A stretch of DNA of 64,000 nucleotides from Octopus sinensis (GCF_006345805.1 NC_043014.1:5332001-5396000), one strand, 5' to 3'. Counted from the stretch's first letter, positions 5,572 to 58,370 are shown. The notes: generated by a model not told the origin, from the sequence alone. Numbers and translations are program-made.

Positions 5572-6071
5572 GTGTCGTTGGTGGACAACATTTTTCCCAT
5601 ACTGGTGGCGGAAGTAATCTCTTATGTCTACCCAACGATCCCATTTGGGCCAATTATACTACAGAAGGTGAAGATGGGGGTTGGATTTATGGCAGTGAAT
5701 ATCAACTACAGTTATACCCAACTAATAAACTCTTTTCTTTTGCTAACGCTAAATCACTTCATGATCACAACGTTCCGTGTGCTGTCTGTTCGACACGACA
5801 ACCTGCCGTTGTTATGACGTTACCAGCCAGGACAAAGTGTTACGCTGGTTGGACAGCAGAGTATTCGGGATATTTGATGACCGAGCATTATAGTGATAAA
5901 GGCAGATATGAATATGTGTGTGTGGATTATGCACCAGAAGCTGATCCAGCAGGTTACAGAAACGAAGATGGAGCTGTTTTATATTTCGTTCAGGCTGCTT
6001 GTGGTTCATTGCCATGTCCACCGTATGTCCATGGTCAAGAATTAACCTGCGTTGTGTGCAGTAAATATTGA
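5572..6071 (+). CDS. Copy A exon 4 (terminal), C4-like domain GVVGGQHFSHTGGGSNLLCLP...CVVCSKY*
   Basis: ttctag acceptor. Manually read open frame from 5574 is in frame with track ORF 5814..6071. Conserved CLP, CAVC, CVD, CGSLPCPPY and CVVC motifs. Confidence 0.92.
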
Positions 6072-6340
6072 ATAGAAATTAAATTCACTTCCACATGAAA
6101 ATATGCCTGTGAATTACAAGAAACAATATAAAATTTTCAATTTTGTTACCTTATATTTTCTTCAAAGTATGTCTATCGTTACAATAAACTGTCGTACTAG
6201 TTTACAGAAGATATTCAAACAATACAAAAGAGGCGACGTAGAATGCCAGAAATATCCTCAAAATCAAGAAAAATCTAAATCTGTCGAAATGATTCTAGAA
6301 AACATTTTGTAAGATTTCAGTTTATCAAACTTATCGTTGA

Positions 6341-6346
6341 AATAAA
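6341..6346 (+). terminator. Probable polyadenylation signal (also 24012, 37108, 58660)
   Basis: AATAAA in a cagtttatcaaa..ttgaaataaaa block conserved in all four 3' UTRs, although the flanks diverge. Confidence 0.55.
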
Positions 6347-7994
6347 ATGTTATTTTGTTTAACAGTATTTTGTCTTCTGTCTCATGATTCAACAAACCCC
6401 AAATAAAGTACCACCATAGAATTATATCAGCTTTTCGTGCACAGCCTTAGAATTTCTAATACTCGACGCTACTATCTCAGACATCTTGGTTTTCAAATTA
6501 CAACTCGGATTCTGACGAGGAGCCATGAACCGCTACATTACTTAGCACAGAACTTAACTGATTCTTTCAACAACAACCAGATACTTCCACACAATCCATT
6601 CTATTTGCCGTTATTAATCAGGAAAGCTTTCCGTTCCATTCCAAACCCATATCTTATAAAACCTATTTATCGTCTACTTTAGAAATATTACAAAATGTTC
6701 AAATTAAGCTTTCTGAGAATGTGGAATTTACACGATCAATCCCTCAAAAACAGTCGAAATAAGTATTGGTCCTGCCAACCTAAATCTATATCACAAAATT
6801 CCCACCTCTCTTCGAAATAAGATACAAAATGAAACTCGATGCCCACAACATACACATCATATACTAAACGCTGATATACAAGAATAAGAAAGGAAATCAA
6901 CCAGAAAAATTGCCTCATTTCAGCGACAGAGATCATCAAATACGACGATTTCTTTCACTCATCTACGTAAACATACCAGAACCGAAGAAAGGATGGATCC
7001 TAGAAGCTGAATACATTTCATGTAAAACGAATACAACACCCATAAAAGTGAGAGTAAAGAGAGCAAATATAGTCAGGGCAAACACGGATCCTGTGTGTAA
7101 GAAGGCTGAGATGTTGTGAGGTTATATCCAATAGGATTCATGATTGTATGTTGGAGTGCGTCCAATATTTGTTAGATACACGAAGGCTAACAACATCACG
7201 TTCCAATAAATATTAAAGATTGCTGAGTGTTTACAATCCGGCTGTAATTATTCTGATAGGTAAATCCGGATTCGCTTCTCTGGATTATGAATATATTCCT
7301 GACAGTAAATTCTAAACTATTGCACAGAATACGGACGCTGGTAAATCATCAAATTTTTCTTTTGATTCAGTTGTTAGTGATGCAGCATAATTAGACAGTT
7401 AAAACGACCGCCATGTGTTTAAGCTGTACAGAGCATGCGCAGCTGCATATGCAACCCGCCATTACAATAGGAAGAATTATGGGACTTTGTTGAAAACTGA
7501 CATGGCTGTAAGATTTATTTTGTAGCTTATTTCAAATTAATCTTATTTCGAGGGCCAAACCGAGAGTGTTACACACACACACACACACACACACACATAC
7601 ACACACACACACACACACACACACACACATAAATATATATATATATATATATATATATTAAATTAGGTCAAACTATATCTGAGAGGTCTAATATGCTTCA
7701 TCTAAGAAAAGTTAATCATAACTATGGAATTCCGTCGTACATATGCTGTCCATACGGAAGGTGCACTTGCGAATTGAGTTTCAAATGGGAGACACTGTAC
7801 CTGTATGTTTTGCTATGATTTATAAAACAAGAAGAAAAGTATTCAAAGCTAGTGATAATGACTAGCTAAAAATATGTATGAATGTCATTATTCGGTTTTA
7901 ATAGAATATTTCTGGCAAACAGAAAGAGAGACGGCTTCTAACTTAGTTCCAAGTATATTTCATTGGAATTTCAACAACATGAACACGATATTTT

Positions 7995-54885: not shown

Positions 54886-56317
54886 GTTAGTATACACTAC
54901 ACTTCTGTCCACTCTTTCTCATTTTGTCTTTCTCTTCTTCTCTTTTTATTCCTCTAATTTTCTCTTTGTGTCACCCCCTCTCTTTCCGTTTCTCACACGC
55001 ACACGCACGCACGCACACTCAAGCAAATCATTTGATATATCACGTTTGAAACGATACCTATAGACCCTATAGAGACTGCACAATACTGCTTACTCCTTTC
55101 TAGGTAATTGTTCAAATTAGAATTCTAAATGTTGTCTACTACGGAACAAATGAAAAGAAGGTTGTCTAACCACAGAATATAGATATCTATACGTTAAATT
55201 ACAGATCGGGGATGGACTGAAAACCACCATGGCGATCAAGAATTTCAGGCTGACCAGCTTTGGATTGTAGATATCAAATACCGAGGCTGCTAACTTGTGG
55301 TCAAGTGTACTGGCTACGGATGGTGGTACTGTACGTGAGTGACCAGAGCTGAATAGTGGCCACTTGACTATCATTAACTAGAGTGCCCAATGATCGTAGG
55401 TGTGGGCTAAATTGAATAGAGTCTATTAGAATTGATGACAATGACTGTAAATGGTTAATGGAATGAACGCACAATGTAGAATGAGGCCTGGACAAGCCAC
55501 ACACTGTAACTGATGGAAAAAGCTAAGGACTTTATTCATTAAGTAAAATAGATAGAGACTAAAAATTAGTGAGAGAACACAACAGAGTACAGAATGCACT
55601 TCTATTCTTCTCCGCCTCACCGAAATCGTCCTATCGCTAAAACCTTGCTCTTTTCATGCACCACATCACCTCATTAATTATCCAGTATATCTTTAAAATG
55701 TAATTCCGAAACTTCCAATTCAAAACTGCTGCTTCCAACGGCTTCCCCAATTAACCTCACATTCCTTAAAAATGCTCTAAGTCGACTCTTTACAAACCCT
55801 ACACGTATCATTTATTGGTCGCCCAATTCGCCGTCCATTCTTCTTAAGCACTACGCCATCACTGAATTTTATAATGTTTCCTCCCACCTTTCCTTCCGTT
55901 TATTGCATGAAAAAAAGTCTGTGTGATCATAACGTCTATGTAAGCCTGATTCGTCCGAGTCTAAACGAGAGGTTTAGCCACTGACTCTCGTATGATCGAC
56001 TAAACAACATTTCATCGACGGTTACCCACCACTTCTCTGCATCTCGTCGTCTCCCGTATTGTCCTACTCAAACCTCATACAATTTCCACCACCCAAAATA
56101 TCCCCGTTCACACGTGAACATCTTTTCCATTTCGGATAAACACGAGTGCATGCGTTATAAAATATCTTTCTTTTCCTCCATCTATTCACATCCACCGAAA
56201 AACACCTACCCCATGCAAACATACATATTTATCCACGTCGCAACCACAAACACTTACCCGTAAACACAAAACATATATATATATATATATATATATATAT
56301 ATATATATATATATATA

Positions 56318-56699
56318 CTAGCAGTATCGCCCGGCGTTGCTCGGGTTGTAAGGGAAATAACTATATAAGCATTTTTAGAGAGTTATAGCCAAAAATTAGC
56401 AACAAAATGCATTAAAAATTGAAATAAAATTAAGGTAAATTTTTTTTTAAATCGTTGACACATCGTAGATATTTTTAGAGAGTTACTTCCCTTATATAAA
56501 AGCGAAAAAATGCATTAAAATGGAAAAATATGATGGTAATTTTTTTTAAATCGTAGACTCGCGCTAATACCCAGAAGGGCTCGATATGAATCACGACTAT
56601 AAGATACCCGCTTTTGGTTAAACTGCACCGCAAAATGTGGGAGTAGTTACGAATCTAAATCGTAGGAGACAGACACACAACTTCACTCTTATATAAAGA
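56318..56699 (-). mobile_element. Non-autonomous Helitron (~380 bp), termini like 3160-3549 but different interior
   Basis: Minus-strand 5' TCTTTATATAAGAG; 3' CCCGAGCAACGCCGGGCGATACTGCTAG. Confidence 0.78.
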
Positions 56700-57870
56700 T
56701 GCTTTTTTTTTCAGTCATAGAGTTAGATTTATGAAGGTCTTCAGTAGAAAATCCTTCGAATTCTGACTCGCTGCTTGATATAATGAAATTCGTATCCATT
56801 TTTTGTCAGAATTACAAATTTTGAAAACACAATAGGAACAAATTTCGTAAAAAAATCTCCCATAATTCACGGAATTAAAATTACACTTCGATTTTTGTAC
56901 AAAACTGTATTTGAAGTGTTTACGAAGTATAATACGTGTTTTCACGAATGTACTAAAGAGATTTACTCTGATATTCTCATTTAAATATGAATAGGTAAAT
57001 TCGGGCGGTTTGGTAACGAAAGGGTTAAACGGATGCATACATTTATTAATAACTATATATAAGTGTCGTCTGTTTATACATAAACACTGTTTCATACTTT
57101 CAGTTTTGTCTTCCTCAAATCACTCTGTCGCTATTTACTCTCTTCCAAGAACATTTTCACTCACTCTTATCTCTGAGCTTGCCATACATTTTACTCATGT
57201 ATTTATCAGCGTGATAGACAGAAACAAATATTACATCGCCAACGCATTCTATTGTCTACCTGTCAACACACACAGTGAATTAGTTTCATTTTATTCATTG
57301 CACACTGTGTGTGTGCGTTTGCGTGTGCTGTAAACCAGACTAAGAAAAGCATTTGACATACACACCAGAATGTGAGTTTTCTGTAAATTTTGCTTAATTG
57401 GAGTTTAAATTTTAAAAACTGGACCTGGCATGACCCGATGCATTCTACTCTTAAAAATGCTAGGTAAATTGTAATTGAAGAAATCCTATATTGTAGATTT
57501 CTATAAGTGACAAAGGGAGGCGGATAAAATCTGCCTTTTATAATAAGATATATATATATATATATATATATATATATATATATATGGAGTTGCATGAAAC
57601 AATCGTACCGCAAAACCTCTGGATGTCCTTGTTGCTTACTATGATATATATATATGAAGAGAATGCAAATGCAATTACACAGCAACGTTCTCATGCATAC
57701 AGCAACACACAGCTTACACTCATAAAAACACTAACACATACACCACAATTCGTTCACAGGTGAGTAAACATGACTTATTTTAAGTGAAAAATTGTAATGA
57801 ATGTTTCCGTTATTTCATATATAATTTTGCTTAATATCTTTTTTACTTGATTTATTCTTACCAATTCTAG

Positions 57871-58370
57871 GTGTGGCTGGTGGACAATGGTACGACCACG
57901 AAGGTGGCGGAAGTAATTACTTATGTCTACCCAACGATCCCATTTGGGCCAATTATACAACAGAAGTTGAAGCAGGTGGTTACATTTATGGCAGTGAATA
58001 TCAACTATATTTATACCCAACTAATAAACTCTTTTCTTTTGCTAACGCTAAATCAATTAATGATCACAACGTTCCGTGCGCTGTCTGTTTGACACGACAA
58101 CCTGCTGTTGTTATGATGTTACCAGCCAGGACACAGTGTTACGACGGTTGGACAGCTGAGTATTCGGGATATTTGATGACTGGTCATCATCAAAATAGGG
58201 GCAGACATGAATATGTATGTGTGGACTATGCACCAGAAGCTGATCCAGCAGGTTACAGAGACGAAAATGGAGCTGTATTTTATTTCGTTCAGGGTGTTTG
58301 TGGTTCATTGCCATGTCCACCGTATGTCAAAGGTCAAGAATTAACCTGCGTTGTGTGCAGTAAACATTGA
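57871..58370 (+). CDS. Copy E exon 4, C4-like domain (GVAGGQWYDHEGGGSNYLCLP...CSKH*)
   Basis: ttctag acceptor, track ORF 57873..58370. Confidence 0.92.

Follow-up and report, generated by a model that had tools for sequence, protein, structure and literature searches.

What keeps the copies of a tandemly repeated octopus gene identical over long parts of their last coding exon and yet so different in a handful of short stretches? The question is raised by a 64,000-nucleotide stretch of Octopus sinensis DNA (hereafter the window), which is part of a lineage-specific tandem array and holds four copies, A, B, C and E, of the last coding exon (exon 4) of a gene for a membrane-anchored, Cys-rich protein. 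An initial annotation had described the variation among these copies as concentrated in a few hypervariable patches on an invariant Cys scaffold and had attributed it to diversifying selection on one ligand-binding face. The reading that we favor, and consider probable though well short of certain, is that the array encodes type II membrane proteins with a domain like the NC1 domain of collagen IV, in which the core is invariant, the loops recombine among paralogs and a few codons are positively selected, and that the products would together serve as a recognition repertoire.

Exon 4 variation is clustered on an invariant core

We compared 18 exon-4 copies with nucleotide sequence, namely the four of the window, five that lie upstream in L001, and nine at loci 1–1.3 Mb away on the same chromosome. 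All 18 have an intact open reading frame (ORF), an AG acceptor and all of the Cys residues, and all show identical stretches broken by hypervariable clusters. The Cys scaffold described for A/B/C/E extends to the 14 further paralogs, because the nine Cys columns of exon 4 are invariant in every copy; one more Cys, encoded in exon 3, brings the count to 10. The patch peptides quoted in the initial annotation are all found on the + strand in the four window copies, codon 6 in patch 1 does read CAT/AAG/TTT/TGG in A/B/C/E, and the four copies do not differ in EYVCVDYAPEADPAGYR, CGSLPCPPYV or the N-Y-T sequon.

Variable columns, which number 45 of 166 among A/B/C/E, are strongly clustered. Neighboring columns are both variable in 22 cases where 11.9 would be expected, and none of 10,000 permutations produced as many; with a clustering statistic weighted by the number of states, p is 0.001 for the four copies, and for the 18 no permutation out of 10,000 equalled the observed value. 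Thus, the concentration of variation stands (p<0.001, with the 18 paralogs behaving alike), but the small number of patches does not: the five that were named account for just 23 of the 45, and the remaining 22 fall in columns 30–37, 131–137, 89/92 and 154–156, for about eight variable clusters in total. Nor are the patches variable throughout, since they include conserved positions such as the Y in QLQLYPT and the V-Q in VQAA. Loop lengths are nearly constant, with one or two indels among the 18 copies.

The hypervariable columns also have a distinctive composition. His makes up 18% of their residues versus 1% elsewhere, and Asp and Glu are enriched as well. The variable columns that bear His are 6, 9, 47, 64, 106, 107, 109 and 113 (in copy A, for example, at window positions 5589–5591 and 5886–5891), a pattern that hints at metal- or pH-dependent binding. 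An extra, unpaired Cys occurs within hypervariable patches in copy C (ECHSHK, 36655–36657) and at column 35 in three other paralogs.

Exon 4 is a recombination mosaic

Recombination between paralogs is a major feature of exon 4 that was absent from the earlier account. In pairwise comparisons, blocks that are fully identical at the nucleotide level adjoin blocks that are highly divergent; for example, the 74 C-terminal codons of comb_22623 and comb_34191 are 100% identical, and their N-terminal halves have more than 20 differences. Grouping A/B/C/E by their flanks likewise gives different results 5′ and 3′ of exon 4. A breakpoint search by GARD-like dynamic programming, with neighbor-joining (NJ) trees and HKY likelihood, lowered the corrected Akaike information criterion from 6952 for one tree to 6254 for five segments, with four breakpoints near codons 21, 54, 102, and 114 or 138, i.e., at least four inside 498 nt. 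Under a codon model, five trees beat one tree by 594 log-likelihood units. Because five trees fit so much better, the patches have essentially separate genealogies, and patch variants have been reassorted among paralogs. We conclude that exon 4 is a recombination mosaic whose diversity arises by point substitution followed by reshuffling through segmental gene conversion or unequal crossing-over.

A small class of codons carries a signal of positive selection

The Nei-Gojobori ratio of nonsynonymous to synonymous divergence (dN/dS) is 0.47 over the whole exon and 0.33 outside the patches. Over 27 patch codons it is 1.00 among A/B/C/E and 0.61 among the 14 other paralogs, so that dN/dS averaged over the named patches does not exceed 1, an outcome that the initial annotation itself had named as counting against its proposal.

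Codon site models were fitted to the 18 sequences with our own GY94/F3x4 implementation, in which the five segment trees were fitted one at a time. The likelihood-ratio test (LRT) of M2a against M1a is 113 with one tree, 32.7 with five trees and 10.6 (p=0.005) with an over-partitioned set of eight trees, the single-tree value being inflated because exon 4 recombines. The M0 estimate of ω=1.01 obtained on a single tree was likewise rejected as a recombination artefact, as the segment trees give 0.34–0.53. With five trees, M2a places 4.8% of codons at ω 3.9, 30% at ω 1 and 65% at ω 0.07. The comparison of M7 and M8 that had been proposed as a check also prefers M8 when it is run on segment trees (LRT 33.2); M8 is preferred over M8a as well (LRT 23.0), with 7.8% of codons at ω 2.7, and on eight trees 6.7% of codons are at ω 2.6. 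To calibrate these values, we simulated 32 data sets under M1a on eight trees and analyzed them with the five-segment pipeline, which leaves part of the recombination unmodelled. Null LRTs average 4.7 and reach 13.6 at most; run through this pipeline, the octopus sequences score 32.1, above all 32 nulls.

The columns with a posterior probability of ω>1 above 0.9 are 37, 46, 47, 89, 92 and 108, with column 106 weakly supported, and columns 37, 46 and 89 keep their support with eight trees. Of the six better supported columns, 37, 89 and 92 fall in none of the five named patches, and patches 1, 3 and 5 are classed as neutral, with ω near 1. The proposal of diversifying selection is therefore partly supported, for a class of sites and not for those three patches. 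We conclude that a small class of loop codons, about 5–8% at ω of about 2.7–3.9, is under positive selection and that most of the patch variability is compatible with neutrality.

Orthologs give a second view of the same codons. In two O. sinensis/O. vulgaris pairs, exon 4 is 98.4% and 97.0% identical, and a flank is collinear in the independent O. vulgaris assembly, at 97.2% identity over 10.5 kb. The two pairs together have 11 nonsynonymous and 9 synonymous codon differences, and 6 of the 11 amino-acid differences are in hypervariable columns, including 37, 89 and 92. At hypervariable codons dN is about 0.06 versus an overall dS of about 0.04, a difference that is not significant because there are too few changes; the counts are consistent with selection. 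One further candidate, L006_22325 as the positional ortholog of comb_81701, was dropped, with an exon 4 only 91% identical and flanks that match other units better. The two orthologous units are about 100 kb apart in O. vulgaris (L006/L007, OX597833.1, 11.39–11.51 Mb) and their O. sinensis counterparts about 1.1 Mb apart (L001 at 5.3 Mb and L002 at 4.1 Mb), which suggests either array rearrangement or an assembly difference.

The ectodomain is a spongin-type, NC1-like domain without a collagen helix

A protein search with copy A recovered dozens of paralogs in O. sinensis, O. vulgaris, O. bimaculoides and Argonauta, along with remote homologs in annelids, bivalves, cnidarians and amphioxus (phmmer E 1e-38 to 1e-50). 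The ectodomain is a spongin-type, collagen-IV NC1-like domain. The spongin short-chain collagen-related family (Exposito et al. 1991), reviewed in PMC5395295, is present across invertebrates other than ecdysozoans, and its domain has seven Cys in common with collagen IV, three of its own, and no HSQ motifs (PMC5395295). The octopus proteins share with it a C-terminal, Cys-rich, NC1-like domain with 10 Cys by count, and no HSQ motif is visible in the octopus exon-4 sequences.

What precedes the domain is different. In the cnidarian and amphioxus homologs, the domain is preceded by a signal peptide and Gly-X-Y repeats, and bivalve homologs have a coiled-coil-like segment where the collagen segment stands, whereas the octopod proteins have a signal-anchor, in place of a cleavable signal peptide, and a short linker. 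Translation of the window in six frames shows no Gly-X-Y run of five or more, and the Pfam Collagen model (PF01391) matches none of the octopus homologs and 10 non-octopus homologs. Octopods have thus lost the collagen helix. The octopus genes further differ from the spongin family in forming a tandem array over megabases, in their hypervariable loops and in the exchange of segments between paralogs.

AlphaFold2 models of the domain were well predicted, with a predicted local distance difference test (pLDDT) score of 80.8 for full-length P0001 (above 87 in the domain) and 92.5 for the domain-only protein P0015 (predicted template-modelling score 0.87). In Foldseek comparisons with the Protein Data Bank (PDB), the top 21 and the top 36 matches were all collagen IV NC1 (E about 1e-5 to 5e-5, probability 0.95–1.0), the sole fold family recovered (PF01413; 1LI1, 1M3D, 5NAX). 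Differences from NC1 are the 10 Cys instead of 12, the roughly 185 residues instead of about 229, and the absence of a triple helix. In these same matches the global superposition is poor (template-modelling (TM) score 0.17–0.30, root-mean-square deviation 15–19 Å), and we read the models as indicating homology to NC1 with a different global arrangement, membership in the NC1 fold itself being tentative. None of 112 family members matches the Pfam C4 model (PF01413) even with E allowed up to 1, and NC1 chains were likewise absent from the results of a profile search against PDB sequences. Profile-profile alignment with hhalign places residues 160–204 of the family profile onto residues 100–146 of human α1(IV) NC1 (a query sequence identical to 1LI1_A) at E 6e-5; the match is partial, with 42 columns and a probability of 64%, and it aligns the CAVC...C..GW..Y.GY core.

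The variable sites can be placed on this framework. Hypervariable columns lie outside regular secondary structure in 21 of 24 cases versus 80 of 141 other columns (Fisher p=0.003, AlphaFold2 model). The hhalign alignment sets patch 4 on the SM1′ hairpin (NC1 residues 144–154), and a BLASTP comparison of the N-terminal with the C-terminal half sets patch 1 opposite patch 4, in a weak match (E=0.52) whose register is compatible with the two subdomains of NC1. Patch 4 and, by internal repeat, patch 1 thus appear from sequence to correspond to NC1 SM1′ and SM1. Collagen IV trimers have a central tunnel toward which the SM1 and SM1′ hairpins point, and these hairpins are described as having a key part in determining how protomers form (PMC6211539). 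By homology with that arrangement (PMC6211539), the two variable hairpins would face the same side.

Gene structure and layout of the array

The repeated unit is a four-exon gene of about 10–16 kb, as established with tblastn using full-length relatives and by inspection of splice sites (Table 1). Its predicted product is a type II protein of about 255 amino acids, in which a signal-anchor helix follows a short cytoplasmic tail and a linker of about 35 amino acids joins the helix to a Cys-rich ectodomain of about 185 amino acids. Exon 1 (144 nt, 48 amino acids) contains the ATG and the signal-anchor helix SISSLIAFGVLLVLTIVIL, which has a Kyte-Doolittle value of 2.67 across 19 residues. Exon 2 (52 nt) codes for linker, and exon 3 (75 nt) for the start of the domain, SLYTRWGRTTCP...VYDG, including its first Cys. 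Exon 4 encodes 165 amino acids of the NC1-like domain and the stop codon, and in A/B/C/E, all on the + strand, its ORF begins directly after a TTCTAG or TTGTAG acceptor, in phase 1.

Table 1. Features of the window; patches and columns are numbered in exon 4, and P(ω>1) is the posterior probability of positive selection.
Feature	Position	Strand	Remarks
Window	CM016876.1 ~5,332,001-5,396,000 (O. sinensis)		Bases 1-16071 equal CM016876.1 at 100%
Gene A exon 4	5572-6071	+	100% match to P0001 residues 99-264; AG acceptor, phase 1
Gene B exon 4	23229-23728	+	Intact ORF; not represented in protein collection
Gene C exon 4	36341-36837	+	One-codon deletion in patch 2
Gene E exon 4	57871-58370	+	Intact ORF
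Exon 3	A 3899-3973; others 21428-21502, 33821-33895, 54811-54885	+	GT-AG, frames join
Exon 2	Gene C 31083-31134; others 18560-18611, 47166-47217, 52039-52090	+	
Exon 1	Gene C 26637-26780; gene E 41339-41482; next gene 61171-61314	+	
Unit D	47160-49298	+	Truncated duplicate: exon 2, part of intron 2, alternative exon
Patch 1, copy A QHFSHT	5586-5603	+	Tip of long β-hairpin of N-subdomain (DSSP of models); ω near 1
Extra cluster, copy A TEGEDGGW, columns 30-37	5661-5684	+	Column 37 (5682-5684): P(ω>1) 0.95-0.96
Patch 2, copy A QLQLYPT	5703-5723	+	Columns 46-47 (5709-5714): P(ω>1) >0.99, five trees
Patch 3, copy A KSLH	5751-5762	+	Classed neutral
K88-C-Y-A91, copy A	5835-5846	+	Columns 89 and 92 flank invariant Cys; P(ω>1) 0.99 and 0.97
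Patch 4, copy A EHYSDK	5883-5900	+	Tip of C-subdomain hairpin; column 108: P(ω>1) 0.96
Patch 5, copy A VQAA	5988-5999	+	Classed neutral

Two genes assemble completely within the window: gene C from 26637 to 36837 and gene E from 41339 to 58370, with ORFs of 255 and 256 amino acids and GT-AG introns. Exon 1 of the next gene lies about 3–4.5 kb downstream of the preceding gene's exon 4, and the third exon 1, at 61171, opens a gene that continues past the end of the window. The 5′ exons of gene A are upstream of the window. Exons 2–4 of gene B are intact, and the gene has no exon 1 of its own (6071–18560) because a segment of about 3.5 kb that carries exon 1 elsewhere (compare 40695–44235) is missing between A exon 4 and B exon 2. 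Gene B may have been truncated at its 5′ end, or it may rely on a promoter farther upstream. There is no fifth exon 4, and hence no copy D, because unit D consists only of a duplicated exon 2 and about 2 kb; this truncated duplicate is also why gene E has two copies of exon 2 (the third and fourth in Table 1). The alternative exon at 49239–49298 (SSLLDLLCCPETVNIVLPSK) is used by several isoforms modelled at NCBI without the signal-anchor exon, and these isoforms could be secreted.

The 5′ part of the units evolves differently from exon 4. Across 14 copies, with distances that exceed 1 Mb in some cases, the 300 nt of promoter-proximal sequence and exon 1 diverge by 2.1% and 1.2%, respectively, versus 6.9% for the intron just 3′ of exon 1 and about 10% for exon 4. 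Copies of this near-identical stretch of promoter and exon 1 are found in the window at 26337–26780, 41039–41482 and 61171–61314, and 14 further copies lie in L001–L003. These values point to strong concerted evolution of, or constraint on, the promoter and leader exon; the units undergo homogenisation, and exon 4 escapes it.

Current annotation captures little of the array. P0001 is annotated as 'short-chain collagen C4-like [Octopus sinensis]' and is 100% identical to copy A over exon 4, and A is the sole member of A/B/C/E that belongs to an annotated protein; none of the proteins retrieved is more than 89% identical to any of the other three. The NCBI (Gnomon) model of P0001 spans 86 kb (L001 10001–96006, ending at window position 6071), joins far-upstream exons to A exon 4, and skips five intact exon-4 copies as well as A's own exon 3. 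In the 154 kb examined, eight of nine exon-4 copies are without an annotated protein. A full-text search found a single mention of the family in an octopus, one peptide in the O. vulgaris ink proteome (PMC10142993).

Several other repeats lie between and within the units. A 1.63-kb segment at 10860–12486 recurs at 15495–17120 with 99.7% identity, between genes A and B, and is a very recent duplication or a young pair of mobile elements. Long short-period tandem repeats, with a copy spacing of 8–12 nt, occur a few kb 3′ of exon 4 (about 7877–9400 and 25335–25770), and such tracts probably recur in further units. Inverted repeats lie inside intron 2, at 1455–2128 versus 53659–54342 (90%) and at 1237–1459 versus 1926–2147 (78%).

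Discussion

The reading that we propose runs as follows. The paralogs share an unchanging core made up of the 10 Cys, the N-glycan sequon and the β-strands and differ in about eight loop clusters, two of which are the tips of the two long β-hairpins. About 65% of codons are strongly constrained (ω about 0.07), about 30% effectively neutral and about 5–8% positively selected. The array could then act as a germline-encoded repertoire of recognition modules that would sit on the cell surface and might possibly be shed. Loss of the trimerising collagen or coiled-coil segment may have freed the hairpins that formerly lay at the trimer axis to serve as variable binding loops. A fuller version, in which a collagen-less, membrane-tethered NC1-like domain of octopods has become a large germline repertoire with former trimer-interface hairpins as binding loops, gene conversion among dozens of tandem copies shuffles the loop variants combinatorially, the products act as a hitherto unrecognised family of immune-type, chemosensory or self-recognition receptors on a fold that is not known for such a role, and 5′-truncated copies such as B perhaps act only as donors, is a speculation to which we give rather little credence.

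A number of our results weigh against the reading that we favor, and those on selection would fit an account in which constraint is merely relaxed: unimportant loops would drift at ω near 1, purifying selection and concerted evolution would hold the scaffold, and the apparent ω above 1 would be an artefact of recombination, tree error or multi-nucleotide changes. The patch-average dN/dS is 0.6–1.0 and not above 1, about 30% of codons fit ω=1, and the LRT decays from 113 to 32.7 to 10.6 as more genealogies are allowed. Our models are home-made, with NJ trees, branch lengths fixed from M0 and only 18 sequences, and when some recombination goes unmodelled the nominal chi-square test is too permissive, with 9 of the 32 null runs exceeding 5.99. 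The hypervariable codons themselves also have more synonymous diversity, 0.365 versus about 0.15, so multi-nucleotide or micro-conversion events may contribute; around the patches we saw no smooth decay of synonymous diversity of the kind expected from hitch-hiking, the excess being confined to the hypervariable codons and their immediate neighbors. Even so, the LRT of the real data is 2.4 times the largest of the 32 null values and M8 is better than M8a. Drift in unimportant loops also sits poorly with loop lengths that are nearly fixed, with variable columns rich in His, Asp and Glu rather than of random composition, and with an exon 4 that is diverse while the 5′ part of the units is homogenised to 1–2%. 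We therefore regard relaxed constraint by itself as unlikely, though by no means negligible. The remaining points against our reading concern the fold and the genes: the poor global superposition on NC1 and the lack of Pfam C4 matches described above, the missing exon 1 of gene B, and the position of B, C and E outside the annotation, which makes their expression putative.

There are two other explanations. Many of the copies could be dead genes or artefacts of a collapsed or misjoined repeat assembly, with variation that has no functional meaning, as the sole annotation of A, the 86-kb Gnomon model that skips five copies, the truncated unit D and the state of gene B would allow. We consider this very improbable, given that all 18 exon-4 copies keep their ORF, Cys and AG acceptors, that scaffold ω is about 0.07, that two copies have O. 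vulgaris orthologs at 97–98% identity with a 10.5-kb collinear flank at 97.2%, and that genes C and E assemble cleanly. Alternatively, the variable hairpins could set which paralogs form homo- or hetero-oligomers and so provide a combinatorial code for cell-surface identity or adhesion, as in collagen IV. Such an assembly code would suit proteins that are predicted to be membrane-anchored and whose relatives bear, ahead of this domain, a trimerising segment of collagen or coiled-coil-like type, and it would give a role to patch 4, which aligns to SM1′, and to its internal-repeat counterpart patch 1, SM1 and SM1′ being determinants of protomers (PMC6211539). However, the trimerising segment has been lost from the octopus proteins, spongin domains are without the NC1 domain-swapping region (PMC5395295), the superposition on NC1 is poor (TM 0.25–0.30), and the selected sites 37, 46, 47, 89 and 92 are not at the two hairpin tips. 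An assembly code is thus, in our view, a doubtful but serious competitor of the recognition repertoire.

Snail FREPs, amphioxus VCBPs, sea urchin Sp185/333 and cone snail conotoxins are diversified families or families with a conserved leader and a hypervariable body. The octopus array resembles them in being a tandem multigene family with an invariant Cys framework and hypervariable patches, a conserved 5′ leader exon and a divergent mature exon, gene conversion or recombination, and ω>1 at the level of sites. It differs from them in its NC1-like fold and in a selection signal that is limited to a few codons. In a full-text literature search, no octopus expansion, hypervariability or selection was described for the spongin/NC1-like family. 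What is new is a collagen-less, membrane-anchored, tandemly amplified and diversified version of the known spongin/NC1-like domain.

The locus also carries a warning, in that recombination within arrays of this kind greatly inflates the usual dN/dS site tests, as the fall of the LRT from 113 to 33 to 11 illustrates. Large cephalopod gene expansions, such as those of protocadherins and zinc fingers, have been linked to neural complexity, and to our knowledge cephalopods are without adaptive immunity. If the array is truly a cell-surface repertoire, it would be a candidate recognition system that combines an invariant disulfide scaffold with shuffled loops and selected sites, and an ancient domain for assembly of the extracellular matrix, NC1, would have been re-used for diversification.

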